Below are positions 4,623-60,902 of a DNA stretch of 64,000 nt, one piece after another; within the stretch, counting starts at the first letter, position 1, and each line of letters starts with the position of its first letter. The stretch comes from Octopus sinensis. Its lineage: Eukaryota. The stretch lies in contig NC_043014.1 in the NCBI RefSeq assembly GCF_006345805.1, forward strand, positions 49,104,001 to 49,168,000. The letters are read 5' to 3'. Under the pieces are notes generated by a model. It worked only from the letters and a program-made list of their open reading frames with translations. It did no database searches and was not told the origin of the DNA. Position numbers and translations under genes: made by a program.

Positions 4623-4991
4623 GCGCGTGTGTGTATGTGTGTGTGAGAGAGTGTTATATCATATTATATTACATAATATAAGTGATCTACAACAGCCTGT
4701 CCATCTTGTTGTTGTTGTCGTTGTTGTTGATGATGATGATGATGCATTTATCACTCTGTCAAACACACCTCTTACATTGTTCTCTCACTTATTTACGCTC
4801 AGTTTTCCGTGCGCATATTAAAAACATCGAACATTCGGATCCAAAATGCTCAGCCACTACATCAACCGTATCAGACAGGGAAGGTTTGACATTGTTTCAT
4901 TAACTAAAAATCGAAAATTGGAGAATATCTTTTTGTCAATGATAATGTGTGATATCATATTTCATACGCAATCATTTTGTTTTTATTTCAG

Positions 4992-6394
4992 GATGAAGGA
5001 AGTAGAAGAGAATCGTATAGGGAGAGAATTAAAAGATTTCCAAATGTAATGGAAGAAAGTTTTGAGAAAGCCGAAGAAGGTTGGTCGTCTTTCTACAAAA
5101 AAGTAGAAAGTACGTTGAATAATGATATCTTATTTGGTTTAGAAGATGAGATTCGTCAAAAGAACGTCCTAGTATATATTCTGTGGCAGATGAACGATAA
5201 ATTTTCAGCTGAAAAATTAGCCAATGAAGTTCGAGAAAAGAAGCCAGATAACCTGGTGGCATTAACCAACCTTGCATTCATTCATTTGTACGATGGAAAT
5301 ATCCCTGAGGTAAGAAACCTTTTGGATAATCTAAGCAAGCTTGAAGAAAGAGAAAATTTCTCGCTGATAGAAGCAGAAGGCAAAAGAAATGTTGCTTATT
5401 GTTTAGCTACTATATCTTTTGAAGATCATGAAAGAGCTGTCGAAGATCATGAAAGAGCTGTAAAGAGAAAAGATGTGAAAATATTAAGGAATCAATACAG
5501 TACTTAGAGAAAATACGATGTGCTTTTCCACGCCATATTGATAAGGGCCTAATGGGAAGAACATTAGCATTGATTGGTTTGTTTCAACTTAGTCCTTATA
5601 ATTTTCATAGTCAACCAGCTAAAAAGTATTTTCAGAGAGCTCTTGATATTTCCCCTGATGACCGCTATGTTTTGGAGAAAAGTGCCTATCATTATATACG
5701 TTCATATCAGCATGAAGAAGGAAGAAAATTGCTTGAAAAAGCAATTGAAATAAAGGCAACATCATATTCTCATCATCAGCTTGGATTAGTTTATCTAAGA
5801 ATGAATACACCAAAATATACATATGTCCCAATGAACAAACAATTCTCAAAAGAAACGAATGTATTTGCGAAAGTTTTAAAACATGCTCAAAGTATTCCTC
5901 ATAGAGAAAGGAATGAGTTAATCAACAAAGCTGAATATCACTTTCAACAAGCTCTTGAACTTTCTCATGAATATTCACCTACTCTCTATGATATAATTTT
6001 ATTATATATGTCTTTGAAAGAATATGACAATGCCAGGAAGTATTGTGAAAGATTTAAAGCAGATAACACAAGGCAAGATGTTAATTTTTACATTTTGTTT
6101 GGAAAATTATGTTTTAAAGAAGCAGATGTAAAAAATGATGAAGAAGAAAAAGATCAATTAAGATGTACAGGAATGGATTGGTTTGTTCTGGCTCTTAAAT
6201 CTGCTGTAGAATTTCTTCCTTTCGACAAAGACCTGATAGAAATTTGGGAGATAAAGGAAATAATACTTGATTTATATGAGTATGGAAATGGAAATACTGA
6301 ATACAAAAAATTTGTTTTGGAATTCATTCAGTCAGTAGAAGACCTTGCCAATGACAAAGCGTTCCAAAATATACTTCACAAGAGTGAATTATAA
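4992..6394 (+). pseudogene. IFIT/TTC22-like TPR gene copy 1, large coding exon, frameshifted; its ATG exon lies left of the window
   Basis: Acceptor TTTTGTTTTTATTTCAG|GAT at 4991/4992. ORFs 4977-5507 and 5552-6394 together match the intact copy. A 95-bp deletion replaced by a 16-bp templated insert (5445-5460) shifts the frame. Confidence 0.9.
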
Positions 6395-6683
6395 AAGATA
6401 AATTGTGTTCATACTTTTCTTATTACTTTCTTTATTGATAATACTCAACAATATTTTGAAATTCATTGTTATATATCTCACGTTTTCTGAAGTAATACCA
6501 AATACGTTTATCTAAAGCTAAATTTTAAAAATCATATAAATTTAGACTACTCCTTTCTTTGAAACACAAGATGAATGTAGCAAAGAATTCTACAGGAAAT
6601 ATTACTGCCTTTGTAATGGATGTGGCCCTGAAACCAACGTTGAAATGATGTCAGAGCATTCAAAGGATGACGACATAACTAAC

Positions 6684-7020
6684 TTTCATTTTGACATATT
6701 TTAACATCCCCAAACAGTGAAGAAGTGGCAGAAAATATTAGAATGAATCTAGAGATATACTTTTGCTTGAAAGTTCCATTTGATAATCGTGACTACATAT
6801 TGGGATGATGTAAAACTGGAAACCTTTGCATTATACTGAAACATCGTTGGAATATTGGAATTCTATAAGTAACAATCAAAAATTACTAATTTACACAAAA
6901 GACACCAAGTAAATCCTTGAAGATTGACAACCTAAGTAAGGACGACATTTTACTATCAGGAAGCATGAAGCCAGAAATTCCAAAACATTTAAAAAGTTTT
7001 CCTCAATTTAAATGGCAATG

Positions 7021-7065
<45 letters not shown>

Positions 7066-7136
7066 GGGGGGGAGAGAGAGAGAGTGAGAGAGAGATAGAG
7101 ATGAATAGTTTTAGTTTCCTTTGCAGACTATATTAG
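6684..7136 (+). pseudogene. Decayed TIR-like domain relic behind the stop codon of copy 1
   Basis: With one frameshift repaired it reads FHFDIF[L]TSPNSEEVAENI.MNLEI.FCLKVPFDNRDYILG*...IPKHLKSFPQFKW...FSFLCRLY*, following the order of TIR box1, box2 (RD..PG-like) and box3. Internal stops present. Confidence 0.6.
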
Positions 7137-10227: not shown

Positions 10228-10474
10228 TGAACCGCTAAGTTACGGGAATGTAAACACACCACCATCGTTGTCAAGCGATGTTGGGAGGACAAACACATAC
10301 ACACACATACATATATATATACATATATACGACGGCTTCTTTCAGTTTCCGTCTACCAAATCCTGGCCCGAAGCTATAGTAAAGACGCTTGCTCAAGGTG
10401 CCATGCAGTGGGACTGAACTCAGAACCATGTAGTTCGTAACCAAGCTACTTAACACAAAGCCACTCCTACGCCT
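10228..10474 (-). mobile_element. tRNA-derived SINE, 3'-truncated; also ~31145-31392 and ~46507-46754
   Basis: Reverse-complement head GGCGTAGGAGTGGCTTTGTGTTAAGTAGCTTG with a box-B-like GGTTCTGAGTTCAGTCCC, and the internal (TG)n tract of the family. Confidence 0.85.
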
Positions 10475-10617
10475 ATTTAAATTATTTTTTTTTTCTAATT
10501 TGATAATATTCGAGGAATTTATATGACTCACTATTTGCTTTCTTTTTCGTTTTTAGTTGTTTCTGGTTTCTAGGTATTTAATAAACGTATTCAGGTTACT
10601 CGTTTATAAATGACATT

Positions 10618-11448
10618 GGATCGTTTCGGTTTGAACGGCAGTTTTTAAAAATAATTTACACGTAGGAGTGGCTGTGTGGTAAGTAGCTTGTTTACCAACC
10701 ACATGGTTTTGGGTTCAGTCGCACTGTGTGGCACCTTGGGCAAGTGTCTTCTACCATAGCCTCAGGCCGACCAAAGCCTTGTGAGTAGATTTGGTAGATA
10801 GAAACTGAAAGAAGCCTGTCGTATATATGTATATATATATATATGCGTGTGTGTGTTTGTATGTCTGTGTTTGTCCCCCTAGCATTGCTTGACAACCGAT
10901 GCTGGTGTGTTTACGACCTCGTAACTTAGCGGTTCGGCAAAAGAGACCAATAGAATAAGTACTGGGCTTGCAAAAGAATAAGTCCTGGGGTCGAGTTGCT
11001 TGATTAAAGGTGGTGCTCCAGTATGGCCGCAGTCAAATGACTGAAACAAGTAAAAGAGTAAAAGAGAGAGAGAGAGAGTAACTAAACACTTTTAAACTTC
11101 GTATACTGGTAGAATGTGTTTATAAAACATCTTTTTCTCTTGGCTGCCTTGAGAAAATTCTATAGTTTGTAAGATATTTGTTGTTTTTTCCCTCCAATTT
11201 CTGCAATTTCAACCAATCAATGATGTCTATTGAGCTGAAAACATTCTGTGTGGTATGAATATGTTCCTTGTTTAAGAAACAGATTGGGTTTATTTACATT
11301 TGTGAAGAAAAAAAAATACCCTTCCCCCACCTCTAACCCTAAACCTAAAAGAGATTGAAATGCAATAGATCGATACTAGGGTCATAATTACGGTGACAAT
11401 TTCATATGACATGCTAGAAAAAACTGCCGTTCAAACCGAAAAGATCCC
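10618..11448. mobile_element. GGATC-TIR MITE interrupted by a nested SINE; further fragments of the family at 11450-12089
   Basis: Left TIR at 10618, right TIR ending at 11448. The body resumes at ~11080 after the SINE. Confidence 0.8.
10660..11068 (+). mobile_element. Full-length tRNA-derived SINE of octopus type
   Basis: Head CGTAGGAGTGGCTGTGTGGTAAGTAGCTTG, core CACCTTGGGCAAGTG, (TA)/(TG) tract, tail GACTGAAACAAGTAAAAGAGTAAAAGAG. Confidence 0.88.
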
Positions 11449-12650: not shown

Positions 12651-13060
12651 CTCTTTTACTCTTTTACTTGTTTCAGTCATGTGACAGCGGCCATACTGGA
12701 GCACCGCCTTTAATCGAGCAACTCGACCCCGGGACTTATACTTTTGCAAGCCCAGTACTTATTCTATTGGTCTCTTTTGCCGAACCGCTAAGTAACGGGG
12801 ACGTAAACACACCAGCATCGGTTGTCAAGCAATGCTAGGGGGACAAACACAGACATACAAACACACACACGCATATATATATATATATACATATATACGA
12901 CAGGCTTCTTTCAGTTTCTGTCTACCAAATCTACTCACAAGGCTTTGGTCGGCCCGAGGCTATGGTAGAAGACGCTTGCCCAAGATTCCACACAGTGGGA
13001 CTGAACCCAAAACCATGTGGTTGGTAAACAAGCTACTTACCACACAGCCACTCATGCGCC
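12651..13060 (-). mobile_element. Full-length SINE; truncated equivalents at ~31587-31974 and ~46949-47336
   Basis: Reverse complement of the SINE at 10660, abutting a (TA)n tract. Confidence 0.88.
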
Positions 13061-13067
13061 TATATAT

Positions 13068-13143
<76 letters not shown>

Positions 13144-13146
13144 TAA

Positions 13147-13248
13147 TTTATTATAGAAGGAGCTTCTACAGGACTAGTACTGTTTCATTCAAGAGAATTT
13201 CTCTTGAATGAAACAGTACTAGTCCTGTAGAGCTCCTTCTATAATAAA
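13147..13248. repeat. ~102-bp near-perfect palindrome, unit 1 only
   Basis: Arm TTTATTATAGAAGGAGCTTCTACAGGACTAGTACTGTTTCATTCAAGAGAA, a 1-nt centre, then the reverse complement with one bulge. Confidence 0.95.
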
Positions 13249-13313
13249 TAATTTTACTCTGCTATGTATTGAGTACCTTACTTACTGTGGTTAACCCGGA
13301 TCAACCCGGGACC

Positions 13314-13363
<50 letters not shown>

Positions 13364-13381
13364 TAGTATATATATATATAT

Positions 13382-13686
13382 ACTAGCAGTATCGCCTGGC
13401 GTTGCTCGGGTTTGTAAGGGAAATAACTATATAAGCATTTTTAGAGAGTTACTTCCCTTATATAACCCGAGCAAAAATCATTAAAATGCGGAAAAATGAT
13501 GGTAAATTTTTTTTTAAATCGTAGACTCATCGTACACGCGCGCTAATACCCAGAAGGGCTCGATATGAATGACGACTATAAGATACCCGCTTTTTGGTTA
13601 AACTGCACCGCAAAATGTGGGAGTAGTTAGGAATCTAAATCGGAGGAGACAGAGTCTCACACACACAACTTGAATTTTATATATAA

Positions 13687-14159: not shown

Positions 14160-15139
14160 GAATCTTTTCTGTTTGATGGACGGAATTTTCTAGTTAACTA
14201 AACAATTTCAAACTTCGTATACTGGTAGAATGTGTCAAAAGAAAACATTTTGTAAACAAAATTGAAAACAAAATTGTAATTCGTAACTTAAACGTAGTTT
14301 AATTTTACGAATTTTAACTCATGAAATCGCAGCATTCGAGCTCAAATTATTTACTGCGTCTAAAAACTCACACACACACGTCTTATTCATCCTTGTCTCT
14401 TCTGTCTTCTACATGTGCTAGAAATAACAGCTATATCTCATCAATCGATGAATTTCGTCGCCCAATAAAAATATTAACGATATTTTTTGAATATTTTCTT
14501 TATTTTTTTTTACCATGGTTTTGAAGGGACAGAAACAACAAAAACAAAACAATAATATGCCTAAATCGGTCTCGCGCGTGGAGTGTGAATAGTATTGTAA
14601 AAATTTGCGAAATATTTTTTCATAAAAGGATGCCCCAGCTTGTCGGAAGCTGTGATATAAATTGGGAAAAAAATCCTCGACACCAGTGCGTAATTGGTAC
14701 TTAATTATCGACCCCGAAACGATGAAACATTGACCCCTTCCCTTCTGGTTTATTTACCTTTTGTGCAAATTTGTTGCGGCAAGTGGCAAAACACGATCGT
14801 GTATGTGTGCGTATGTGTGAGTACGTATATGTCCGTTTGTATGTGTGTGTACGCTTATATATTAATTACTATGTGCTTGTGCAAATGTATATGCATGTGT
14901 TTGAGAGAGAGAGAGAGAGAATGTGTGTGTGTCGTGCGTCTGCTATATTTCTCTATCAATATCGATAACGCAGCAATGCTGGGATTTCATTGGTTAAAAT
15001 TCGTAAAATTAAACTACGTTTAACTTACAAATTACAATTTTGTTTACAATAATGTTTTCTTTTGACACATTCTACCAGTATACGAAGTTTCAAATTGTTT
15101 AGTTAACTAGAAAATTCATCCATCAAACAGAAAAGATCC
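14160..15139. mobile_element. 980-bp non-autonomous DNA transposon with ~165-bp TIRs and an 8-bp TSD (hAT-like)
   Basis: 14160-14336 is the reverse complement of 14975-15139. CAATAGAG flanks both ends (14152-14159, 15140-15147). An uninterrupted paralogous site is present at ~13899-13960. Confidence 0.88.
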
Positions 15140-16045
15140 CAATAGAGAGATGTTTTACTTTCACTTTTGACATGTAATACCGGTTAAACCAGTATTCGAG
15201 TAGTCAATGCGGAAGTAAAATGTTTTTACAGAAGTCTTTCACTTTTACTCATTTAGTTGGTGACATTAATGGGCGTTGATATTATTATCTGAGATTCCCA
15301 AAACAGTTTTTATTATTCTTATTATTTTCCCTCTTCAATCATTGGTTTTAAAATTCGTAAAATTAACTACGTTTAAGTTACAAATTACAATTTTGTTTAC
15401 AATAATGTTTTCTTTTGACACATTCTACCAGTATACGAAGTTTCAAATTGTTTAGTTAACTAGAAAATTGCGTCCACCAAACAGAAAAGATCCAATAGAG
15501 AGATGTTTTACTTTCACTTTTGACATGTGATATCGATTCACCAGTATTCGAGTAGGTCAATGCGGAAGTAAAATGTTTTACAGAAGTCTTTCACTTTTAC
15601 TCATTTAGTTGGTGACATTAACGGGCGTTGATATTATTATCTGAGATTCTCAAAACAGTTTTTATTATTTCTTAATTATTTTCCTCTTCAATCATTGGTT
15701 AAAATTCGTAAAATTAAACTACGTTTAAGTTACAAATTACAATTTTGTTTACAATAATGTTTTCTTTTGACACATTCTACCAGTATACGAAGTTTGAAAT
15801 TGTTTAGTTAACTAGAAAATTGCGTCCACCAAACAGAAAAGATCCCAATAGAGAGATGTTTTACTTTCACTTTTGACATGTGATATCGATTCACCAGTAT
15901 TCGAGTAGGTCAATGCGGAAGTAAAATGTTTTTACAGAAGTCTTTCACTTTTACTCATTTAGTTGGTGACATTAACGGGCGTTGATATTATTATCTGAGA
16001 TTCCCAAAACAGTTTTTATTATTTCTTAATTATTTTACTTCTCCA
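15140..16045. repeat. ~353-bp tandem repeat (IRF-site flank plus right TIR), 3 flank copies upstream of the copy-2 ATG exon
   Basis: AAAAGATCC ends at 15139, 15493 and 15845, each followed by TTTACTTTCACTTTTG and TCTTTCACTTTTAC. Confidence 0.92.
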
Positions 16046-16180
16046 ATCTCGACTGTTTTACTTTATTAATCCCTTCACAACTTCCAGCATTCCAATAGGA
16101 CCTGGTTTCCAGAGAGGAACACTTGCACAAAAAGTGACACACTCTCTCTGTATATAATATTCGTTGCCATATATTTACCC

Positions 16181-16457: not shown

Positions 16458-16795
16458 ACTCTTTACTCTCTCTTTTACTTGTTTCAGTCATTTGACTGCG
16501 GCCATGCTGGAGCACCGCCTTTAATCGAGCAACTCGACCCCGGGACTTATTCTTTTGTAAGCCCAGTACTTATTCTATCGGTCTCTTTTGCCGAACCGCT
16601 AGGTAACGGGGACATCGGTTGTCATGCACACACACTCAAACATATACATATATACGACGGGCTTCTTTCAGTTTCCGTTTACCAAATCACAAAGCTATAG
16701 TAGAAGACACTTGCCCAAGATGCCATGCAGTGGGACTGAACCCGGAGCCATGTGGTTGGTAAGCATGCTACTTACCACACAGCCACTCCAGCGCC
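16458..16795 (-). mobile_element. SINE at the start of the intron; also ~49818-50154, and a remnant at ~34432-34528
   Basis: Reverse complement of the SINE family, with head GGCGCTGGAGTGGCTGTGTGGTAAG and tail GACTGAAACAAGTAAAAGAG. Confidence 0.88.
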
Positions 16796-16812
16796 TATAT
16801 ATATATATATAT

Positions 16813-19800
16813 CGTCCCAGATGCGATAACACTTGTTCTGCGTAACTTATCAAGTCTGACAACTTCCGACAGTGTACAAAAGCGTGCTGGACGGTTTCAT
16901 CGTCCAACCCGCATCTTGGACAAGTCGGTGGCACTGAAATTCCGTGCCGCGATAACTTCTCGCGAACAGGTAAAGCATTCCTATAACACTGCCAGGCCAG
17001 GGATCTTTGGAAATTATCCAAATACCCCGTCCTGAAAGTCTTTTTAAACAGGTTGGTAAGCTGGTCTTCGTCAAACCCCAGAGCCCCTCCTAGGACGTCG
17101 TCGTTCTTTGCCTCTACCAGCCTGCTATAAAATACCGAGGTGGTATTTCCGCAGCCGGCCTTGCCCGCCTTGTGGATCAGCGTGAGTGCCTGTCGGCACT
17201 CCTTTTGCCATAAAGTCAGATTCCGTCTTTTGATGCGACCGGGTTTAAAATTCACTAAGGAAGCCGGTCTCGGGAAAAATTCCCCTGCCAGCGGACTCCA
17301 CACCTTATCACCCTCCAGGTGGTGCCAGAGATGCTTCAGCCTCAACGCATGCCTGCGCATCATCAACCAAGGCATTCCTAACCCACCCTTTAACGGTTCC
17401 TGGCAGCAAACGGAGCGCCTCACAAGTGGCTTTCCTCCCTTCCACAAAAAGCGGAAAAGGATTCGCTCCAACTTGCTAAGCCATGAATCGGGGCAAGGGA
17501 CAGCGGTCAGGCGGTAAGTGATTACAGATGCAATGAACATCTGTGCCACCTCCGCCCTTCCTTTCAAGGACAGAGACCTTCCGGACCAGGTCCGTACTAT
17601 GGCCTCCACCTTGTTCGTCACCTCACTCCAATTCCTCTCCGTTTGGGAGTCTGACCCAAACCAAACTCCTAGCAACTTAACAACCACAGTGTCACGACAC
17701 TGGACGATATCGACTTGCTCCTCCAGGTGCCGAGGCGCAAGCCAACCGACTTGTCCTTGTTAACCCTTGCTCCTGCCACCGCCTCGTATCCTCTGATAGC
17801 ATCTTCTACACAAGGTAGCTGGGCCTCATTGGACACGATGAGGGTGACGTCATCCGCATAAGCAGTAACCGTCCTCCCACCTCCGATCTCATCCGGGTTA
17901 CTTCCCAGCCTCTCCAACTTTCGCAGCAATGGCTCGAGAGCCAACACGTATAAAAGTGGTGACAAGAGGCACCCTTGACGAACTGAACATTCGATCGAAA
18001 ACGGTTCCGTTAGGTATCCGTTTATCTGGACGGTGGACTTGATGCCGTTATACATAGCGGAGATCCAACCGCGAAATTCAGGGCCCAGTCCAGCCGCTTC
18101 GAGGACCGTCGCCAGGTACTTATGGTCTACCCTATCGAACGCTTTACTTTGGTCTAAATGGACCATTACCCCGCCCTTGCCGGTTAATTTACCCACCCTA
18201 TCTAAGGTGTAGCGTATAAGGTGAATATTGTCCTGGATCGACCTGCCTGGAATTGCACATGTCTGTGCTTTCCCTACAAGTTTCTCCACGACAATCGTCA
18301 ACCTTTTTGCCAACACCTTGGCCAAAATCTTTAACTCTACATTAAGTAGAGTTATGGGCCTGTAATTACTAATGTTATCCCCCTTGCTCGGGTCTTTCTG
18401 GATTAGCGTCACCACTCCCCGGCTTACAGAACTGGGAATTCTCCCATTCTGCTGCCAGTTCGCGTAGACGCCTGCCATTATTCCCCCGAACAAGTCCGGC
18501 ATACTTTGGTAAAACTCGTAGGGCAGACCATCCAACCCCGGCGACTTCTCCCCGGCGCATCCAGCCAGTATCCCCTCTATCTCCGCGGGAGTGATCGCTC
18601 CTTCACAGCACTCCACCTCACGCCCCGAGAGCCGCGGTCCGCCGGCTAGGAAGTCCTTTAAGGCCCTCCCCCGTTCCGGCGCCACACCACCCCCGAACAC
18701 GCGGGCGAAATGATGGTGAAGAAACTTTTGCATCTCCTCCTGTCCATAGATCTTTTGTCCCTGTTCGTCAGTTAAAGACTTGATTGAAGCTTTGTTACCT
18801 CTCTGACTCTCCACTCGACGGGCCCATCCGGCAACGTTAATACCTTCTCGTTTCCCAGCGCGTAGCTTAGCTCTGACTCTGCAACCTTCGTGTTTGGAGT
18901 TAAGGTGACGGTACAATACCGTCCTTGCCGCCATCACTCCGGATGCAGAGCCAGCTTCCATTGCCTCGTTTAGATTCTTAACTAAATTGTCCTCTATCCT
19001 AGACCTATCTAACCTTAGCTGATTGCTAAATCTAATGGACTCTGAACGAATGGCTCTTTTGAGGGAGTGCCACCATCTATTGTTAATGATGGTGCCACAC
19101 AATGCCCTCTGTACTAACACCTTAATCCGGGTACGGAAGTCTTCACAATTCAAAATAGACTTGTTCAGCTTCCAGTACCCGGGTCCCTGTCTATGGCACT
19201 TATCTAATTGCACCCTACAAGTCACAAATTTGTGATCCGTGTAAGGCACAATGTGAAACTGTGGACAACTAAACGTATCCTTATCTCTTTTCCTAACGAA
19301 TATCCGATCTATATACGATGTGTGAGCCGTCGTTGTTACTCCACGTCCACTGTTAACGGTCCACTAGATCAAAGCTCTCTAGTAGACCCTTGAGGCTAGG
19401 TTTCCCCTTCCTATTGGTTGAGCCAACACTGTCGACCCGCGCTTCAAGGACAGTGTTAAAGTCCCCTACTAAGACTACCGTTTTCGACGTCGCTAAAAAG
19501 GGCTCCAGATTCCGAAAAAAACCCGCCTGCCTACACTCATTCGGAGCGTAGACAGCTACCAACCTGAAGGACTGTTTACTTACGTGGGTCACATCCAGAA
19601 CGACCAGCCTGCCTTCTGGGTCCAGAAAGACAGTACTTACCTGCAAGTCCAAGCTCTTCCTGATAAGGACTGCCACGCCTCTTCCTCTTCCTCGGCTAGG
19701 AGAAATAAATTTCTCAAAACCATTTAGAAGAGGCGAGAACGCTTGGGCCCCGTTCATCTTGGACTCGGTTACAATAGCTACATCCACTCCGTGTGTCGTG

Positions 19801-21545: not shown

Positions 21546-22077
21546 TTTTAGAATTTTAACCTAACACAACTATAATAAGAGAAGAATAACCGATCCTAGA
21601 TTTGGTAGCGTAGCATCATCTAGTTATTAGCTTTCGAAAATGTTGTGGGGAAAATGAATTCCATTGTTTATTTAAATGGTTTTTCAGTTTCATTAAACAC
21701 ACATACACAAATGTATATACACTCTCACACGTTCTCCAGAGTCTACAGTGGGGTATACATACTCACGCACGCACACAGTCGAGTAATGGTAAAGGGTGTG
21801 CGTGTGCACACGCACACACGCAGAGTCAGAAACGCACGCACACACTTGATCGGGCGTGCGCACACAAAACACACACACACACACACTCACACACAGAATG
21901 TCTTCAATCTTATGCATTGTCAACTTGCGAAATACTTCTTACGTAGAATGTTTCCACAATAGAAAAGTTTCAAATTTTCTAAATAACCGATCCAATTTCT
22001 TTTCGAACCTATGATAAATTTGATAACCTGATATTATCCAAGCAATTACCCAAGCAATTAGAGGTCAAAAACTCCCT

Positions 22078-24598: not shown

Positions 24599-24973
24599 GC
24601 GCGTGTGTGTATGTGTGTGTGAGAGAGTGTTATATCATATTATATTACATAATATAAGTGATCTGCAACAGCCTGTCCATCTTGTTGTTGTTGTCGTTGT
24701 TGTTGATGATGATGATGATGATGATGCATTTATCACTCTGTCAAACACACCTCTTACATTGTTCTCTCACTTATTTACGCTCAGTTTTCTGTGCGCATAT
24801 TAAAAACATCGAACATTCGGATCCAAAATGCTCAGCCACTACATCAACCGTATCAGACAAGGAAGGTTTGACATTGTTTCATTAACTAAAAATCGAAAAT
24901 TCGAGAATATCTTTTTGTCAATGATAATGTGTGATATCATATTTCATACGCAATCATTTTGTTTTTATTTCAG

Positions 24974-26453
24974 GATGAAGGAAGTAGAAGAGAATCGTAT
25001 AGGGAGAGAATTAAAAGATTTCCAAATGTAATGGAAGAAAGTTTTGAGAAAGCCGAAGAAGGTTGGTCGTCTTTCTACAAAAAAGTAGAAAGTACGTTGA
25101 ATAATGATATCTTATTTGGTTTAGAAGATGAGATTCGTCAAAAGAACGTCCTAGTATATATTCTGTGGCAGATGAACGATAAATTTTCAGCTGAAAAATT
25201 AGCCAATGAAGTTCGAGAAAAGAAGCCAGATAACCTGGTGGCATTAACCAACCTTGCATTCATTCATTTGTACGATGGAAATATCCCTGAGGTAAGAAAC
25301 CTTTTGGATAATCTAAGCAAGCTTGAAGAAAGAGAAAATTTCTCGCTGATAGAAGCAGAAGGCAAAAGAAATGTTGCTTATTGTTTAGCTACTATATCTT
25401 TTGAAGATCATGAAAGAGCTGTCGAACTTTACAAAGAGTCTCTCAACGTTTGTCCAGACATTATCTGTGTATGTTTTCTATTGCTTTGTTGCAATATCGT
25501 TGTTTAAAAAAGAACATAGTAAAGAGAAAAGACGTGAAAATATTAAGGAATCAATACAGTACTTAGAGAAAATACGATGTGCTTTTCCACGCCATATTGA
25601 TAAGGCCCTAATGGGAAGAACATTAGCATTGATTGGTTTGTTTCAACTTAGTCCTTATAATTTTCATAGTCAACCAGCTAAAGAGTATTTTCAGAGAGCT
25701 CTTGATATTTCCCCTGATGACCGCTATGTTTTGGAGAAAAGTGCCTATCATTATATACGTTCATATCAGAATGAAGAAGGAAGAAAATTGCTTGAAAAAG
25801 CAATTGAAATAAAGGCAACATCATATTCTCATCATCAGCTTGGATTAGTTTATCTAAGAATGAATACACCAAAATATACATATGTCCCAATGAACAAACA
25901 ATTCTCAAAAGAAACGAATGAATTTGCGAAAGTTTTAAAACATGCTCAAAGTATTCCTCATATAGAAAGGAATGAGTTAATCAACAAAGCTGAATATCAC
26001 TTTCAACAAGCTCTTGAACTTTCTCATGAATATTCACCTGCTCTCTATGATATCATTTTATTATATATGTCTTTGAAAGAATATGACAATGCCAGGAAGT
26101 ATTGTGAAAGATTTAAAGCAGATAACACAAGGCAAGATGTTAAGTTTTACATTTTGTTTGGAAGATTATGTTTTAAAGAAGCAGATGTAAAAAATGATGA
26201 AGAAGAAAAAGATCAATTAAGACGTACAGGAATGGATTGGTTTGTTCTGGCTCTTAAATCTGCTGTAGAATTTCTTCCTTTCGACAAAGACCTGATAGAA
26301 ATTTGGGAGATAAAGGAAATAATACTTGATTTATATGAGTATGGAAATGGAAATACTGAATACAAAAAATTTGTTTTGGAATTCATTCACTCAGTAGAAG
26401 ACCTTGCCAATGACAAGGCGTTCCAAAATATACTTCACAAGAGTGAATTATAA
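24974..26453 (+). CDS. IFIT/TTC22-like TPR gene copy 2, large exon; two 1-bp deletions (~25460 and ~25520), pseudogene or sequencing error
   Basis: Acceptor TTTCAG|GAT. ORFs 24959-25507 and 25401-26453 reconstruct the protein. CCAGACATTAT replaces CCAGACGATTAT, and CATAGTAAAG replaces CATAGATAAAG. Confidence 0.8.
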
Positions 26454-26742
26454 AAGATAAATTGTGTTCATACTTTTCTTATTACTTTCTTTATTGATAA
26501 TACTCAACAATATTTTGAAATTCATTGTTATATATCTCACGTTTTCTGAAGTAATACCAAACACGTTTATCTAAAGCTAAATTTTAAAAATCATATAAAT
26601 TTAGACTACTCCTTTCTTTGAAACACAAGATGAATGTAGCAAAGAATTCTACAGGAAATATTACTGCCTTTGTAATGGATGTGGCCCTGAAACCAACGTT
26701 GAAATGATGTCAGAGCATTCAAAGGATGACGTCATAACTAAC

Positions 26743-27285
<543 letters not shown>

Positions 27286-34361: not shown

Positions 34362-34391
34362 ATGGCTGAAGAAATGCAGGAAACTCTACAG
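34362..34391 (+). CDS. First coding exon of TPR gene copy 3 (MAEEMQETLQ)
   Basis: ATG, 10 codons, CAG|GTGAGT donor in phase 0. It joins the exon at 40375 to give an uninterrupted 505-aa protein. Confidence 0.82.
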
Positions 34392-39999: not shown

Positions 40000-40374
40000 G
40001 CGCGTGTGTGTATGTGTGTGTGAGAGAGTGTTATATCATATTATATTACATAATTTAAGTGATCTACAACAGCCTGTCCATCTTGTTGTTGTTGTCGTTG
40101 TTGTTGCTGCTGATGATGATGATGATGCATTTATCACTCTGTCAAACACACCTCTTACATTGTTCTCTCACTTATTTACGCTCAGTTTTCTGTGCGCATA
40201 TTAAAAACATCGAACATTCGGATCCAAAATGCTCAGCCACTACATCAACCATATCAGACTAGGAAGGTTTGACATTGTTTCATTAACTAAAAATCGAAAA
40301 TTGGAGAATATTTTTTTGTCAATGGTAATGTGTGATATCATATTTCATACGCAATCATTTTGTTTTTATTTCAG

Positions 40375-41862
40375 GATGAAGGAAGTAGAAGAGAATCGTA
40401 TAGGGAGAGAATTAAAAGATTTCCAAATGTAATGGAAGAAAGTTTTAAGAAAACCAAAGAAGATTGGTCGTCTTTCTACAAAAAAGTAGAAAATTCGTTG
40501 AATAAAGATATCTCATTTGGTTTAGAAGATGAGATTCGTCAAAAGAACGTCCAAGTATATATTCTTTGGCAGATGAAAGATAAATCCAAAGCTGAAGAAT
40601 TAGCCAGTGAAGTTCGAGAAAAGAAGCCAGATAACCTGGTGGCATTAACCAGCCTTGCATTCATTCATTTGAACAATGGAAATATCCCTGAGGTAAGAAA
40701 CCTTTTGGATGATCTAAGTAATCTTGAAGAAAGAGAAAATTTCTCGCTGATAGAAGCAGAAGGCAAAAGAAATGTTGCTTATTGTTTAGCTACTATATCT
40801 TTTGAAGATCATGAAAGAGCTGTCGAACTTTACAAAGAGTCTCTCAACGTTTGTCCGGATGATTATCTGTGTATGTTTTCCATTGCTCTGTTGCAATATC
40901 GTTGTTTAAGAAAGAACATAGATAAAGAGAAAAGATGTGAAAATATTAAGGAATCAATACAGTACTTAGAGAAAATACAATGTGCTTTTCGACAACATAA
41001 TAACAAGGCCCTAATGGGAAGAACATTAGCATTGATTGGTTTGTTTCAACTTAGACCTTATAATTTTCATAGTCAAGTAGCTGAAGAGTATTTTCAGAGA
41101 GCTCTTGATATTTCCCCTGATGACCCCTATGTTTTGGAGAAAAGTGGCAATCATTATATACTTTCAAAGCAGCTTGAAAAAGCAAGAAAAGTGCTTGAAA
41201 AAGCAATTGAAAAAAAGGCAACACCATATTCTCATCATCAGCTTGGGTTACTTTATCTAAGAGATGAGAACCCTACATATACATATGTCCCAGTGAACAA
41301 ACAATTCTCAAAAGAAACGAATGAATTTGCGAAATTTTTAAAACCTCCTCAAAATATTCCTGATAGAGAAAGGAATGAGTTAATCAACAAAGCTGAATAT
41401 CACTTTCAACAAGCTCTTGAACTTTCTTATAGATATTCACCTGCTCTCTATGATATCATTATATTATATATGTCTTTGAAAGAATATGACAATGCCAGGA
41501 AGTATTGTGAAAGATTTAAAGCAGATAATATAATGCAAGATGTTAATTATTACATTTTGTTTGGAAAATTATATTTTAAAGAAGCAGATGTAAAAAATGA
41601 TGAAGAAGAAAAAGATCAATTAAGACGTACAGGAATGGATCGGTTTGTTCGGGGTCTTGAATCTGCTGTAGAATTTCTTCCTTTCAACAAAGACCTGATA
41701 GAAATTTGGGAGATAAAGGAAATAATACTTGAAATATATGAGTATGGAAATGGAAATGGAAATACTGAATACAAAAAACGTGTTTTGGAAATCATTCAGT
41801 CAGTAGAAGACCTTGCCAATGACAAAGCGTTCCAAAATATACTTCACAAGAGTGAATTATAA
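40375..41862 (+). CDS. IFIT/TTC22-like tetratricopeptide-repeat protein, copy 3, large exon, intact (495 aa; 505 aa with exon 1)
   Basis: Open frame from the acceptor TTTCAG|GAT to TAA. Recurrent TPR-type helices: NLVALTSLAFIHL, ERAVELYKESLNVCPDD, AEEYFQRALDISPDDPYVLEK, ARKVLEKAIE...YSHHQLGLLY, AEYHFQQALELS...ALYDIIILY...EYDNARKY. The spacing resembles IFIT and TTC22 N-terminal repeats, judged by eye. Confidence 0.9.
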   Translation, partial: DEGSRRESYRERIKRFPNVMEESFKKTKEDWSSFYKKVENSLNKDISFGLEDEIRQKNVQVYILWQMKDKSKAEELASEVREKKPDNLVALTSLAFIHLNNGNIPEVRNLLDDLSNLEERENFSLIEAEGKRNVAYCLATISFEDHERAVELYKESLNVCPDDYLCMFSIALLQYRCLRKNIDKEKRCENIKESIQYLEKIQCAFRQHNNKALMGRTLALIGLFQLRPYNFHSQVAEEYFQRALDISPDDPYVLEKSGNHYILSKQLEKARKVLEKAIEKKATPYSHHQLGLLYLRDENPTYTYVPVNKQFSKETNEFAKFLKPPQNIPDRERNELINKAEYHFQQALELSYRYSPALYDIIILYMSLKEYDNARKYCERFKADNIMQDVNYYILFGKLYFKEADVKNDEEEKDQLRRTGMDRFVRGLESAVEFLPFNKDLIEIWEIKEIILEIYEYGNGNGNTEYKKRVLEIIQSVEDLANDKAFQNILHKSEL

Positions 41863-42151
41863 AAGATAAATTGTGTTCATACTTTTCTTATTACTTTCTT
41901 TATTGATAATACTCAACAATATTTTGAAATTCATTGTTATATATCTCACGTTTTCTGAAGTAATACCAAACACGTTTATCTAAAGCTAAATTTTAAAAAT
42001 CATATAAATTTAGACTACTCCTTTCTTTGAAACACAAGATGAATGTAGCAAAGAATTCTACAGGAAATATTACTGCCTTTGTAATGGATGTGGCCCTGAA
42101 ACCAACGTTGAAATGACGTCAGAGCATTCAAAGGATGACGTCATAACTAAC

Positions 42152-42648
42152 TTTCATTTTGACATATTTTAACATCCCCAAACAGTGAAGAAGTGGCAGA
42201 AAATATTGGAATGAATCTAGAGATATGTTTTTGCTTGAAAGTTCCATTTGATAATCGTAACTACATATTGGGATGATGTAAAACTGGAAACCTTTGCATT
42301 ATACTGAAACATCGTTGGAATATTGGAATTCTATAAGTAACAATCAAAAATTACTAATTTACACAAAAGACACCAAGTAAATCCTTGAAGATTGACAACC
42401 TAAGTAAGGACGACATTTTACTATCAGGAAGCATGAAGCCAAAAATTCCAAAACATTTAAAAAGTTTTCCTCAATTTAAATGGCAATGTGGAGAGAGAGA
42501 GAGAGAGAGAGAGAGGAGAGGGAGGGGGAGAGAGAGAGTGAGAGAGAGAGAGAGAGGGAGGGGGAGAGAGAGAGTGAGAGAGTGAGAGAGAGAGAAAGAG
42601 AGAGAGAGAGAGATGAATAGTTTTAGTTTCCTTTGCAGACTATATTAG
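42152..42648 (+). pseudogene. Decayed TIR-like relic (copy 3)
   Basis: Same sequence and same lesions as 6684-7136. Confidence 0.55.
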
Positions 42649-45505
42649 TTCGTGTTCATTAGTGTGCAGATCATTTCATGTGTCTGTATTTTGGCAATGT
42701 CCTATCTAAGAGTTACTGCTGTTGTGGTGGTTCTACATCAGATGTAACTTAACATCGGTGACAGGTCTTGATGATAAACTTTAATACTATTTTATTATGA
42801 AAGCACTAAAGAACTGAATGGCATATTTGGCCCTTGTAAATTGTTTGCCTCTTTTCTGGGACACAAGCAAATAACTGAGGCAGCAAAATCTTTCAACAGG
42901 TTAGCCATATGTGGAAGAGTTGTAACTTTCAGTTAAACGGGCATAAAAGAAATCGATGTAATAAACATCACAGAGAAAATACGTATAAACTTATCATCAG
43001 ATCCTCGTTACTTCCCTGCACTTCCCATAAAAACATGTAAACATTCCACTAACCAAACCACATTAGTTATGTATTAAAACCTTTTAACTTAAAGAAGAAA
43101 ATAATGCGGGAGTGCTATGATAGTAGTAGGATGTTGAATGGTCAAGTGACCTAAAAGTGATCACTTGACAATTTTAACATCCTACTACTATCCTAACATC
43201 CTGCATTCTCTTATTATTCTGTCTCTTTCTTCCTCTTCGTCTTCCTCTCCACCACCTCCTTCCTTACTTTACTACTACTGCTGTTTAGAATAACATCTAC
43301 GAAAATATTATAAACAATACATTCAAAAGAGATATCACAAGGATTCAATCACTACTACCATCCACAACAATCCACTTTCTGGGCACAACACCATTTAACA
43401 TCCTACTACTATCATAGCACTCCCATATTATTTCTTCCTCCTCCACCTCCTCCTTCTTCTTCTTCTCTGCCAAGAATTCACAATGACCGCGAACCCCCAA
43501 GAGTAAACAAGAGAGACAGAGACAGGCAGAAACACGGAAAATGTCCCTTGTATTTGAATACTATGCAAACATTCTTTTAAAGTACTTTTCATTTAATTTT
43601 TTCAAAATTTAATTGTTTTCTATACTTACAGTTGAAAAAGTATCAATGACTGAAAACGGTAATGAAATGTTTTTTTCATACAATTATTTTAGCATTTTCT
43701 ACCTTGACTTTTTCCATATTTATATATATATATACATACATACATTTTATTAACCTTAGCCATTTCACATAAACACACACACACCCACAGATTCCTCTCA
43801 ATGACTTCTAATATCATCAATTCACTGGTCAACATATTTCACTACAGATTGACAAATGTATTTTCAAGTGCATCGATGTGTGTAAACTAGGTTGCCAAAC
43901 AGACATGAAACCTGATACCATTGTTCCAACATTTAGCATAAACTCAATGCAGCCTCACTTGGTTAACATTACTTACAAACACAAACAAGCCATTCCAATT
44001 TGTTCTCCTCTTTCTTATAATATCTCGTTCATGTCTAACCCCTGCCATTTTCCCAATAAATAAAGGAAATTTATTTCATTTCATAAACTGAAAATATCGG
44101 AAAGTTTTCATTAAATATAAATTCGAAAATTTGAAAAGAAATTTAATAGTGATATGGGGTAATTCGGAGAAAGAGTGCTTGTGGCCTGGTTCCGTGGTTT
44201 GGTGCCAGGCAGACGGATAAAGCCTTTGTTCTGTCAATTTTTAGAGAAATTAATGAGTTTGGAAAATACCTCTGACCCTTTTCCGGTCAAGCAAAGTTTA
44301 AGAAACCACCCTTTAAAATGCGGTGAGCTGTGAGTTTGTTGGTCAGTTCTGCCTGAGACAGTGAGTTGGCAACAGGTGCAGTCGGGAGAGGCTATGACAG
44401 GGATGACAGTCATGGCGAGAAAGACAGGCAGATAGCATTGGGGGCATGTAGAGCGAAAGAGAGGGATTACGGCGAAAAGGCATGGCTATTGTAGTAGGAG
44501 TTTGTAGCGGTATGTTTTGTTTATGTTAAAATTGTGAACTGTGTTGAAAAGAAAAAGTATTGTGTCAATAAAAGAGAACTGTGATTTGAGGAAAAGAGGA
44601 AGAAAAGAAAGAAAAAAGAACATTGTGTTAAAGAGAAAAAGAAAGAAAGACAATGTTGAACTGTTTCGAACTCTATATTGCATCAAAACATTAATGTTTT
44701 GATTGTTTCCGGACGTTCTGTATTGTGCATGCCTTTTATTGTTTTCTTTTTTTAAATTCTGTTGCAGGTTATTTTCTTTAATGTATCTGATATGTTTCAC
44801 GTTTTATTTGATGTTGTAATAATTGTATAAACTGTTGTTAAGCGTTAAGCAATTGCCTTCTGCCGTCTCTCTCTTTTCTTCCTGTTGTTGTTGTTGTTGT
44901 TATCTCCGGTCGCCGGTTCGAGTTCGCTGCCATCCCCCACAACCGTTTTCTCTGTGGCGGATTCCGTTCGACTGAGCCTGGTGAATCATTGCTCGACTTT
45001 GTAGGGTCCCGGGTTCGAGTTGAGCGATGGCAGGTTCGTAACAACAGCATTGTGTCTACAAGATGCCTGTAACAGCATTGGATTTTCCACAATTGACAAT
45101 AAAAATTGAAATAAAATAAAAATAAAAGTATACAGTTGTGTTTGATTGTTGTTTTCCTTAAAATTATTCAAAGAAACAGATGTATAAGAAGAAAACAATG
45201 AAAGATGAAAAAAAAATGGAAATCAGATGAATTTCTGATGAATTTGATCTCATAGGATACGTATAAGGGAAAGTAATGAGTTGTATGCAGATCTAATATT
45301 GAAGAAACAAACCTTCTAGACTCACAAAATACTTAAACTAAAATATAAGTGTCATTATAGTGGTGGTTGGCTGCAGAGTTTCAAAGTTCGACGTAACTTA
45401 ATGTTTCGTGTAGTGTATGATGAAAGGTATTCAGTGGACAAGGAAGCAGCCGTAAAGGTATGGAAGAGTATTTATATATATATGTATTTATTTATATATA
45501 TATAA

Positions 45506-58299: not shown

Positions 58300-58674
58300 G
58301 CGCGTGTGTGTATGTGTGTGTGAGAGAGTGTTATATCATATTATATTACATAATATAAGTGATCTGCAACAGCCTGTCCATCTTGTTGTTGTTGACGTTG
58401 TTGTTGATGATGATGATGATGATGATGCATTTATCACTCTGTCAAACACACCTCTTACATTGTTCTCTCACTTATTTACGCTCAGTTTTCTGTGCGCATA
58501 TTAAAAACATCGAACATTCGGATCCAAAATGCTCAGCCACTACATCAACCGTATCAGACAAGGAAGGTTTGACATTGTTTCATTAACTAAAAATCGAAAA
58601 TTGGAGAATATCTTTTTGTCAATGATAATGTGTGATATCATATTTCATACGCAATCATTTTGTTTTTATTTCAG

Positions 58675-60155
58675 GATGAAGGAAGTAGAAGAGAATCGTA
58701 TAGGGAGAGAATTAAAAGATTTCCAAATGTAATGGAAGAAAGTTTTGAGAAAGCCGAAGAAGGTTGGTCGTCTTTCTACAAAAAAGTAGAAAGTACGTTG
58801 AATAATGATATCTTATTTGGTTTAGAAGATGAGATTCGTCAAAAGAACGTCCTAGTATATATTCTGTGGCAGATGAACGATAAATTTCAGCTGAAAAATT
58901 AGCCAATGAAGTTCGAGAAAAGAAGCCAGATAACCTGGTGGCATTAACCAACCTTGCATTCATTCATTTGTACGATGGAAATATCCCTGAGGTAAGAAAC
59001 CTTTTGGATAATCTAAGCAAGCTTGAAGAAAGAGAAAATTTCTCGCTGATAGAAGCAGAAGGCAAAAGAAATGTTGCTTATTGTTTAGCTACTATATCTT
59101 TTGAAGATCATGAAAGAGCTGTCGAACTTTACAAAGAGTCTCTCAACGTTTGTCCAGACGATTATCTGTGTATGTTTTCTATTGCTTTGTTGCAATATCG
59201 TTGTTTAAAAAAGAACATAGATAAAGAGAAAAGACGTGAAAATATTAAGGAATCAATACAGTACTTAGAGAAAATACGATGTGCTTTTCCACGCCATATT
59301 GATAAGGCCCTAATGGGAAGAACATTAGCATTGATTGGTTTGTTTCAACTTAGTCCTTATAATTTTCATAGTCAACCAGCTAAAGAGTATTTTCAGAGAG
59401 CTCTTGATATTTCCCCTGATGACCGCTATGTTTTGGAGAAAAGTGCCTATCATTATATACGTTCATATCAGAATGAAGAAGGAAGAAAATTGCTTGAAAA
59501 AGCAATTGAAATAAAGGCAACATCATATTCTCATCATCAGCTTGGATTAGTTTATCTAAGAATGAATACACCAAAATATACATATGTCCCAATGAACAAA
59601 CAATTCTCAAAAGAAACGAATGAATTTGCGAAAGTTTTAAAACATGCTCAAAGTATTCCTCATATAGAAAGGAATGAGTTAATCAACAAAGCTGAATATC
59701 ACTTTCAACAAGCTCTTGAACTTTCTCATGAATGTTCACCTGCTCTCTATGATATCATTTTATTATATATGTCTTTGAAAGAATATGACAATGCCAGGAA
59801 GTATTGTGAAAGATTTAAAGCAGATAACAAAATGCAAGATGTTAATTTTAACATTTTGTTTGGAAGATTATGTTTTAAAGAAGCAGATGTAAAAAATGAT
59901 GAAGAAGAAAAAGATCAATTAAGACGTACAGGAATGGATAGGTTTGTTCTGGCTCTTAAATCTGCTGTAGAATTTCTTCCTTTCAACAAAGACCTGATAG
60001 AAATTTGGGAGATAAAGGAAATAATACTTGATTTATATGAGTATGGAAATGGAAATACTGAATACAAAAAATTTGTTTTGGAATTCATTCACTCAGTAGA
60101 AGACCTTGCCAATGACAAAGCGTTCCAAAATATACTTCACAAGAGTGAATTATAA
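58675..60155 (+). CDS. IFIT/TTC22-like TPR gene copy 4, large exon; one 1-bp deletion in a T-run at ~58885, possibly an error
   Basis: ORFs 58660-58902 and 58938-60155. GATAAATTTCAG here versus GATAAATTTTCAG in copies 1 and 2. Confidence 0.82.
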
Positions 60156-60450
60156 AAGATAAATTGTGTTCATAAATATACTTTCCTTATTACTTTCTTT
60201 ATTGATAATACTCAACAATATTTTGAAATTCATTGTTATATATCTCACGTTTTCTGAAGTAATACCAAACACGTTTATCTAAAGCTAAATTTTAAAAATC
60301 ATATAAATTTAGACTACTCCTTTCTTTGAAACACAAGCTGAATGTAGCAAAGAATTCTACAGGAAATATTACTGCCTTTGTTATGGATGTGGCCCTGAAA
60401 CCAACGTTGAAATGACGTCAGAGCATTCAAAGGATGACGTCATAACTAAC

Positions 60451-60787
60451 TTTCATTTTGACATATTTTAACATCCCCAAACAGTGAAGAAGTGGCAGAA
60501 AATATTGGAATGAATCTAGAGATATGCTTTTGCTTGAAAGTTCCATTTGATAATCGTGACTACATATTGGGATGATGTAAAACTGGAAACCTTTGCATTA
60601 TACTGAAACATCGTTGGAATATTGGAATTCTATAAGTAACAATCAAAAATTACTAATTTACACAAAAGACACCAAGTAAATCATTGAAGATCGATAACCT
60701 AAGTAAGGACGACATTTTACTATCAGGAAACATGAAGCCAGAAATTCCAAAACATTTAAAAAGTTTTCCTCAATTTAAATGGCAATG

Positions 60788-60870
<83 letters not shown>

Positions 60871-60902
60871 ATAGTTTTAGTTTCCTTTGCAGACTATATT
60901 AG
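60451..60902 (+). pseudogene. Decayed TIR-like relic (copy 4)
   Basis: Same sequence and same lesions as 6684-7136. Confidence 0.55.

Follow-up and report, generated by a model that had tools for sequence, protein, structure and literature searches.

In a 64,000-nucleotide stretch of the Octopus sinensis genome (chromosome CM016876.1, approximately positions 49,104,001–49,168,000; the window, in what follows), four tandem units are found, each containing one large exon that encodes an IFIT-like protein built of tetratricopeptide repeats (TPR); directly behind the stop codon of each of these exons lies the relic of a further C-terminal region, which is intact and in frame in longer paralogues. 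The account presented here, namely that the relic, now dead, was once the C-terminal third of an ancestral gene encoding a TPR array plus an additional domain, that it goes back to one old truncation, that it is now carried by a young tandem array, and that the lost domain is probably a TIR, is considered as a whole to be very likely.

The Relic and Its Intact Counterparts

The relatives of the TPR protein comprise short forms of 474–510 residues and two long forms, LOC115221491 of O. sinensis (P0014, 741 amino acids), whose locus (L002) lies on the same chromosome as the array at a distance of about 3.6 Mb, and LOC106878804 of O. bimaculoides (P0012, 736 amino acids). The 224 extra residues of the long forms begin after ..DKSEL, exactly where the short forms end, and run ..ETEPDCSKEFFRKCYELCFGFGSETNAKT..VTNFHYDIYILTSPNSEELAENIGMNLDKYFGLKVTFGNRDYILGKYKTVNL..NIGIYLEHSK..IEIPKHLESFPQLKCQSGHRDDIVNIFNFLCSLS; these are the same residues that a preliminary description of the window had read as a fossil domain. 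Indeed, about 750–830 bp behind each of the four stops are colinear with the last 224 codons of LOC115221491. When the 224-residue extension of P0014 alone was used as a tblastn query, each copy was matched by two colinear high-scoring segment pairs lying in two frames, with 45% and 48–50% identity and with E values ranging across the four copies from 1e-30 to 4e-33 (Table 1), which rules out a chance resemblance to the long form and bears out the proposal that a C-terminal domain lies fossilised behind every stop. At the DNA level, copy 3 aligns with the long gene by blastn over 40357–42500 at 71% identity, unbroken through the stop and the relic, and the alignment resumes past a (GA)n tract at 42614–43068 (68.5%), where it covers about 450 bp of the 3' untranslated region (3'UTR). 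The identity to the long gene amounts to 71.6% in the TPR exon and to 73.3% both in the relic and in the 3'UTR; within the relic, it is 66% in the linker and 77.7% in the alpha/beta part. In copy 1, the relic is composed of a helical linker (6395 to about 6650), an alpha/beta, TIR-like part (about 6650 to 7022), the (GA)n tract and the tail of the last helix, and the four post-stop regions are nearly identical apart from the length of this tract. The relic thus combines a significant, colinear match to an intact coding sequence with inherited disabling lesions, as is characteristic of a pseudogenised remnant.

Outside this small group of proteins, the extension has no detectable relatives: a phmmer search against 1.84 billion representative proteins returned only P0012 and the linker of P0016 (an O. 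vulgaris protein described below), with no relative outside the octopuses, and a profile search started from P0012, P0014, and P0016 brought up no additional long forms. At the level of detectable similarity, the family thus seems to be confined to Octopus. A word-index protein search with a 242-residue extension alone gave no match at E ≤ 10, not even to P0014 or P0012, a result which reflects the limit of the index and not an absence.

The truncation itself can be assigned to a single codon, since the serine codon TCA (Ser518 of P0014), in the context GAA TTA TCA (E L S), is replaced by TAA in the context GAA TTA TAA; TCA is found in the long forms of O. sinensis and O. bimaculoides and in the P0016-type gene, TAA in the four copies of the window and in the short gene of O. 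vulgaris. Downstream of it, the linker relic holds several stops, and the first strand of the domain is interrupted by a deletion of 4 nucleotides: where the intact gene reads GAT ATC TAT ATT TTA ACA TCC (DIYILTS), the relic reads GACATATTTTAACATCC, so that GAC ATA TTT TAA stands against the intact GAT ATC TAT ATT TTA. The string GACATATTTTAACATCC is present exactly four times in the window (at 6693, 26752, 42161, and 60460), with no occurrence expected by chance. In-frame stops follow (Table 1), together with further indels amounting to a net loss of 15 nucleotides, and the (GA)n tract occupies, just ahead of the last helix, the site of about 8 nucleotides of the intact gene (..SGHRDD..); the ancestral stop of the relic, TAG, is still recognisable at 7134–7136 of copy 1.

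Most of what the preliminary description had reported about this region is confirmed, in part with corrections. The string and the translations that it quoted are present, in the frames given for them, in all four copies and at the copy offsets listed; the ancestor that it postulated, a longer protein with a TPR part and a further domain, is borne out by P0014, by P0012 and by the O. vulgaris locus L003, all of which keep the domain intact; and the (GA)n tract of variable length, which it regarded as a later growth, is indeed one, 77–168 nucleotides having replaced about 8. The fossil had been placed at 6684–7136, which is part of the relic; the start has to be moved to 6395, directly after the stop, because the first 290 bp or so are the remains of the linker. 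Likewise, the frameshift exists, and it is a deletion of 4 nucleotides relative to the intact gene and not the absence of a single T.

Polarity and Age of the Loss

The identity of the TPR parts is 71–82% within the short group, 80% within the long group, and 52–58% between short and long forms, while the P0016-type lineage (O. vulgaris, locus L003) is only 37–39% identical to all short and long genes and is for this reason taken as the outgroup. The locus L003 carries the linker and the domain, intact in one copy: ...FFQYDVYILTSKSDNGDAKHLAESLVTYFGLQTSYGDSDFTLGIGKMVNVNKVMEDSCHIGIFY...EIAKHLQSFP...LFELLCSSEKDR. In its neighbour P0016 (521 amino acids as annotated), the domain lies behind a 1-nucleotide frameshift at ..KIPFF|QYDVY... 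Given that both the long group and the L003 outgroup keep the domain intact, the domain is ancestral and the short group has lost it. The opposite polarity, in which the short form would be ancestral and the long form would have gained its domain by loss of the stop codon and read-through into 3' sequence, is practically untenable and is refuted by the outgroup comparison, since the outgroup, at 37–39% TPR identity, already has the same linker and domain in frame; moreover, the relic accumulates multiple independent disabling lesions in a sequence that is open in two lineages. As to the locus itself, L003 belongs to a divergent paralogue cluster of O. vulgaris (OX597833.1, 8.80 Mb; segments 2–520 and 13000–13600); the frameshift of P0016 is only a few codons away from the position of the frameshift in the relic of the window, and the intact L003 copy of the domain was absent as a separate protein among the 1.84 billion representatives searched with phmmer.

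The age of the loss is given by the comparison between species. In O. vulgaris, the short gene (L004) shares its stop, its frameshift, and all three further stops with the copies of the window, and the short protein P0007 of O. bimaculoides ends at the same ..SEL; the stop, or the ..SEL end, being common to O. bimaculoides, O. vulgaris, and O. sinensis, the truncation predates all three. In O. bimaculoides, the homology of the short gene (L001, CM046620.1, 8.71 Mb) ends about 130 bp past the stop, and no further part of the relic turned up in the 6 kb downstream of it; around 10255–10800 of this locus, unrelated sequence takes the place of the relic, including a transposon-like open reading frame (ORF) fragment (..FLDLYIEIQNSTCATDVFFKNTDTHQYLNLYSCHPSHIKRNIPYSMARRICAIV..). 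That the loss came before the tandem expansion, as had been proposed from the lesions shared by the four copies, is therefore upheld by the identical lesions of O. vulgaris; the argument first offered for it is weak, because the whole units are 97–100% identical, non-coding DNA included, and it is the comparison across species, not the identity between copies, that dates the event. The four-copy array is far younger than the loss. The homology of the relic, its lesions, the polarity and the relative age of the loss are all read directly from these alignments.

Identity of the Lost Domain

The TIR domain has a flavodoxin-like fold, in which helices alternate with five parallel strands, and is marked by box 1 at the first strand, (F/Y)D(A/V)F(I/V)SY, by box 2 in the BB loop, RDxxPG, and by box 3, FW in the last helix; in the TIRs which are NADases, a conserved Glu of helix C is catalytic. 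The reference set employed here consisted of eight animal sequences (TLR1, TLR2, TLR4, MyD88, MAL, IL-1R1, SARM1, and Toll), which were validated one by one against Pfam (E 1e-13 to 1e-30, 50–105 bits). When the alignment of the octopus domain was compared with these eight TIRs by hhalign, a probability of 82–86%, a P value of 1e-5 to 5e-6 and a score of 37–39 were obtained; the match spans columns 10–83 of the octopus domain and 3–72 of the TIR, in a register which pairs YDIYILTS with YDAFISYS and RDYILGK with RDxxPGK and then continues through a helix, a strand, and S-P-x-F. The observed score was reached by none of 200 column shuffles (12.1 ± 2.2, maximum 20.7) and by none of 200 block shuffles (maximum 25.2), and Pfam-validated profiles of decoy folds scored 13.9 (Response_reg) and 15.1 (Ras). 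Each of the two octopus domain lineages, which are 38% identical to each other, matches the TIR profile on its own in the same register, with scores of 31.7 for the long forms and 25.9 for L003. In agreement with this, a home-built TIR hidden Markov model (HMM), run with the filters off, gave 11.8 bits, colinear over 115 positions and reached by none of 1000 shuffles, and BLASTP against the TIR of TLR2 gave an E value of 0.002 with YD and RDYILGK/RDFIPGK aligned. Box 1 is recognisable as YDIYILTS in P0014 and P0012, as YDVYILTS in L003 and as FDIF-LTS in the relic after its 4-nucleotide deletion; the BB loop, RDYILGK in the long forms and in the relic and SDFTLGI in L003, aligns with RDFIPGK of TLR2; and the sole candidate for box 3, FNFLCS, lies in the C-terminal half, outside the hhalign match. 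The profile and BLASTP comparisons argue that the lost alpha/beta domain is probably a highly divergent TIR.

A number of results weigh against this identification. The hhalign match is limited to the N-terminal half of the domain (strands A–C); the proline of the BB loop is replaced by leucine in every octopus sequence; and the placement of the helix-C Glu is unreliable, since the E of HTEY, which the HMM alignment sets opposite the TIR Glu, is a K in the L003 lineage. No NADase or adaptor function is claimed here. Searches of the Pfam models TIR, TIR_2, and ThsB_TIR and of the other TIR-like models with the relic pieces, the frame-joined relic (X at the stops), the P0014 and P0012 extensions, and the L003 domain gave no match at E ≤ 10; nor did the domain find a match in PADLOC and NCBIfam. 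A phmmer search of the PDB and a search with a three-sequence profile returned no TIR chain, while the TIR of TLR2, used as a control query, finds 41 of them, including MyD88, SIGIRR, and the oyster TIR-STING. AlphaFold2, working from shallow alignments, reached a predicted confidence (pLDDT) of 48 for the 244-residue extension and of 51 for the 144-residue domain; a Foldseek search of the PDB with the better model gave neither a TIR nor any match at E ≤ 0.001, a result which at this model quality is noise and was used neither way, just as the order of strands and helices in the low-pLDDT model, compatible with the TIR fold, is not counted as evidence. The relic alone is marginal against the TIR (hhalign P 0.006; 2.4 bits with the HMM, reached by 18 of 1000 shuffles), and the constraint on the intact alpha/beta domain is weakly documented, its ratio of nonsynonymous to synonymous substitution rates (dN/dS) of 0.52 between species being based on only 16 substitutions.

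Much of this is also what can be said in favour of an alternative in which the relic is real and the lost domain is an octopus-specific alpha/beta domain of another or of a new fold, its TIR motifs being convergent or superficial: the curated HMM libraries and the sequence searches of the PDB are silent, the phmmer search of the representative proteins brought up its own cluster and a linker-only match alone, the prediction of the fold failed, and the C-terminal half of the domain in the L003 lineage matches Pfam Ribosomal_L4 with 22.8 bits and an E value of 7.9e-5, below the gathering score. An actual Ribosomal_L4 identity was rejected, the match being sub-threshold and confined to one lineage, and is taken as a local beta-alpha-beta resemblance. 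Against this alternative stands the specific profile–profile match to the TIR, obtained in the same register from each of two distant lineages, at scores which the decoy alpha/beta folds, remaining at background, do not approach; another or a new fold is accordingly judged rather unlikely, and a divergent TIR remains the preferred assignment. The preliminary description, which had seen the TIR boxes in the relic, had proposed to run the repaired peptide against Pfam TIR and TIR_2; that check fails for the frame-joined relic and for the intact domain alike, so that the TIR identity, sustained by the profile–profile match, can be retained only as probable.

The TPR Genes and Their Transcripts

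The products of the TPR exons match multiple Pfam TPR families, and their relatives are named IFIT5-like or IFIT1B-like by NCBI. The best PDB match of the TPR protein is human IFIT5 (3zgq), with residues 92–409 aligned to 93–388, colinear over about 300 residues, at an E value of 1.9e-7. By sequence, the TPR part may thus be called IFIT-like; the similarity is weak, and orthology is not claimed. Copy 3 contains the sole uninterrupted TPR exon of the window, to which a short first exon is joined, at about 40374, via canonical GTGAGT..CAG splice sites. The frames of the other three are broken: in copy 1 by a 79-nucleotide deletion with a local duplication near 5441–5470, in copy 2 by two 1-nucleotide deletions (after 25459 and 25519), none of these within a homopolymer run, and in copy 4 by one 1-nucleotide deletion (58884) inside a T run, either genuine or an error of the assembly. 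Copies 1, 2, and 4 are either young pseudogenes or, in the case of copy 4, possibly the product of such an error. Near-identical units are hard for assemblers, and it might be supposed, also in view of the T run of copy 4, that the four-copy array, or the indels of its three broken members, are artefacts which conceal fewer or all-intact copies; this is improbable, considering that the units differ from each other by a 3-kb retrotransposon insertion, by the length of the (GA)n tract, by satellite copy number and by the 5–6% divergence of the copy 3 exon, and that the lesions of copies 1 and 2 fall outside homopolymers.

The RefSeq model P0003 (451 amino acids) is encoded at copy 3, its locus being 100% identical to 33362–43172 of the window. 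Instead of running on to ..KSEL, this model leaves the TPR exon at 41541 (..KADNIMQD) and resumes at 42014; its terminal exon takes in 52 linker-relic codons and closes at the stop to which the 4-nucleotide deletion gave rise. The linker relic of copy 3 (42014–42172) could accordingly serve as an alternative terminal exon, in an isoform deprived of the last 105 or so TPR residues, as the annotation of P0003 at exactly this locus, with GT/AG borders at 41542 and 42013, would have it. On the other hand, the splice sites are weak, with a GTTAAT donor and an acceptor lacking a pyrimidine tract, automated pipelines which align a long paralogue can create introns that dodge stops, and the other models of the family (P0001, P0002, P0004–7) terminate at ..SEL; such a use of the relic is therefore regarded as unlikely. 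Most likely, the relic forms part of what is presumed to be the short mRNA's 3'UTR, as suggested by poly(A)-like signals (Table 1) which coincide with the end of the homology to the 3'UTR of the long gene.

Evolutionary Rates of the TPR Exon

The dN/dS of the TPR exon is 0.53 between short and long genes, 1.06 between the long orthologues, and 0.89–1.22 when short genes are compared across species; copy 3 gives 1.5–1.9 against the remaining copies of the window, not significantly above 1. Between O. sinensis and the short gene of O. vulgaris (L004), 4.9–8.2% of the sites of the TPR exon differ, compared with 1.7–3.4% in the relic and in the 1 kb upstream for the same pair of species (Fisher p 4e-9 and 0.006). 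Both between species and between units of the window, the divergence of the TPR exon is 2–4 times that of the adjacent non-coding DNA; in units 2 and 3, for example, the identity of the exons is 87.5–97% and that of the flanks 96–100%. It is because the TPR exon evolves so fast that the dead relic, when compared with the long gene, is no more diverged than the live exon next to it. This pattern points to diversifying selection, to gene conversion between paralogues, or to both, which are not separated here, and it would fit a diversification of the TPR-only genes. The stand-alone effector or decoy that the preliminary description saw in the amplified TPR part is hypothetical, and in the window the TPR frame is broken in three of the four copies.

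Proposed History

On the basis of these comparisons, the ancestral gene would have had about 740 codons, and in its product an IFIT-like TPR array would have been followed by a helical linker (about 85 residues) and an alpha/beta domain (about 140 residues). One C-to-A change would then have turned the serine codon after ..KSEL into TAA, leaving a TPR-only protein of about 510 residues, and the 224 codons downstream would have become 3'UTR and decayed by way of the 4-nucleotide deletion, the stops, the net loss of 15 nucleotides, and the (GA)n microsatellite. The truncation would have occurred once, after the duplication into short and long genes and before the split of O. bimaculoides, O. vulgaris, and O. 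sinensis. The relic itself is presumably without a protein function, serving at most as UTR or, in part, as an alternative terminal exon. If the domain is a TIR, the TPR part of the long form, as sensor or scaffold, would be coupled to signalling or effector output by the TIR, an output which the short form would have lost; the TIR identity and any sensor or effector logic are inferred. A more elaborate scheme, in which an IFIT-like TPR sensor is wired to a cryptic TIR, the fast-evolving TPR-only paralogues act as decoys or regulators, and the dead piece is re-used as a terminal exon, is speculative and has little probability in our estimate.

Relation to Known Systems

The IFITs form an unbroken TPR superhelix of about 470–500 residues, have a pocket for RNA with a 5'-triphosphate or cap0 end, and are induced by antiviral signalling. 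Like vertebrate IFIT1 and IFIT5, the octopus short genes encode an all-TPR protein of about 480–510 residues; a very small first coding exon ahead of a single large one, tandem clustering, and fast evolution, which are typical of IFIT genes, are found in the octopus genes as well. The C-terminal linker and alpha/beta domain of the ancestral and long octopus forms have no counterpart in the vertebrate IFITs, and molluscs are not known to have an interferon system, unlike the vertebrates in which the IFITs occur. Domain loss by a premature stop is commonplace, and the octopus case is clear but ordinary: as elsewhere, a single nonsense mutation was followed by decay downstream, and the lesions were passed on to the descendants; all that stands out is the preservation of the relic, which equals that of the functional exon beside it (73% versus 72% identity to the paralogue).

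Proteins combining TPR and TIR ("TIR-TPR") are a recognised class in surveys of molluscan immune genes (PMC9334734), which goes back to the survey of Gerdol et al. 2017 (cited in PMC6321704). The octopus long form resembles this class in having TPR and a (probable) TIR in one cytosolic chain, and differs from it in that its domain is invisible to models of the Pfam/InterPro type and in that its TPR part is IFIT-like. Since the TIR-like domain is missed by such models, the octopus genes would have remained uncounted in these surveys. Fusions of TIR and STING are known in lophotrochozoans (PMC6723221); by analogy with oyster TIR-STING (PDB 6wt6) and with SARM1, the octopus long form could be regarded as a fusion in which a TIR provides the output of a module that binds a ligand or acts as scaffold. 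It differs from these proteins in the nature of the sensor module, in the order of the domains, and in the absence of the BB-loop proline.

In a literature search of incomplete coverage, no IFIT-like–TIR protein was found described in cephalopods, which argues weakly for novelty. The new elements are modest but concrete, namely a TIR-like domain which the databases miss, its fusion to an IFIT-like TPR array in Octopus, and the precise reconstruction of its loss. The window thus provides a dated example, resolved to the single base, of the conversion of a two-module immune protein into a one-module protein by one nonsense mutation, the sequence of the lost module remaining legible in the 3'UTR. 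It also exposes a C-terminal domain, probably a TIR, in the "uncharacterized" octopus proteins LOC115221491 and LOC106878804, and surveys of cephalopod TIR proteins based on Pfam or InterPro would undercount accordingly. If the assignment is true, an architecture uniting IFIT-like repeats and a TIR would bring together, in an animal that lacks interferon, two antiviral themes which vertebrates keep apart. The TPR exon, evolving faster than its flanks, marks the family as a candidate arms-race locus.

Features and Repeats of the Window

The coordinates of the features discussed above, together with those of the repeats, are collected in Table 1.

Table 1: Features of the window (positions in nucleotides from its first base; relic matches are those of the P0014 extension by tblastn).
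Feature	Position	Strand	Remarks
Copy 1 TPR exon	4977..6394	+	stop TAA 6392–6394; frame broken
Copy 2 TPR exon	24959..26453	+	stop TAA 26451–26453; frame broken
Copy 3 exon 1 (MAEEMQETLQ)	34362–34391	+	from RefSeq model P0003
Copy 3 main coding exon, IFIT-like TPR gene	40374..41862	+	stop TAA 41860–41862; ORF list, Pfam TPR families, RefSeq P0003
Copy 4 TPR exon	58666..60155	+	stop TAA 60153–60155; frame broken
Copy 1 whole relic	6395..7136	+	6477–6701 and 6695–7018, E 1.4e-30
Copy 2 whole relic	26454..27285	+	26536–26760 and 26754–27077, E 8.6e-31
Copy 3 whole relic	41863..42648	+	41945–42169 and 42163–42486, E 1.8e-30
Copy 4 whole relic	60156..60902	+	60244–60468 and 60462–60791, E 4.4e-33
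Truncating nonsense codon TAA	6392..6394	+	codon comparison; same codon at 26451, 41860, 60153
Frameshift site, first strand of the domain	6693..6709	+	same at 26752, 42161, 60460
In-frame stop TGA	6806..6808	+	replaces AAA (Lys after RDYILG)
Further in-frame stops TAA	6866–6868, 6887–6889	+	same three stops in the other three copies
(GA)n-rich microsatellite	7023..7100	+	78 nucleotides in copy 1; 168, 122, and 77 in copies 2–4
Last-helix relic and ancestral stop	7101..7136	+	MNSFSFLCRLY and stop, versus IVNIFNFLCSLS and stop in the intact gene
P0003 annotated intron	41542–42013	+	GT..AG; removes ~105 codons from the end of the TPR exon, its stop and the most stop-rich part of the linker
P0003 annotated terminal coding exon, within the copy 3 relic	42014..42172	+	TTPFFETQDECSKEF...NFHFDIF and stop
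Poly(A)-signal-like hexamers	42960..43078	+	AATAAA 42960, ATTAAA 43073
Non-LTR (LINE-like) retrotransposon, first copy	16695–19874	-	reverse transcriptase ORF split in two
Non-LTR (LINE-like) retrotransposon, second copy	50155–53215	-	uninterrupted reverse transcriptase ORF of 811 amino acids
Satellite arrays, period ~353–356 bp	14987–16048, 36245–36924, 54191–55227		upstream of each gene unit

The start-to-start spacing of the four units is about 19.6–20.1, 15.4, and 17.9–18.3 kb, and the units are mostly 95–100% identical, non-coding DNA included. Their unequal length is due to a minus-strand retrotransposon of the type without long terminal repeats (non-LTR), similar to the long interspersed nuclear elements (LINE), which is present in two of them, and to satellite arrays (repeat period about 355 bp); the 15.4-kb unit is without a full-length retrotransposon, which accounts for most of the difference in length. 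The retrotransposon copies encode an AP-endonuclease ORF (173 amino acids) and an ORF with reverse transcriptase and zf-RVT, and are GC-rich (0.44–0.52 versus about 0.34). The satellite arrays contain 2–3 copies each, with an internal identity of 95–98%, and related satellite copies occur near 919–1706 and 20531–21674.

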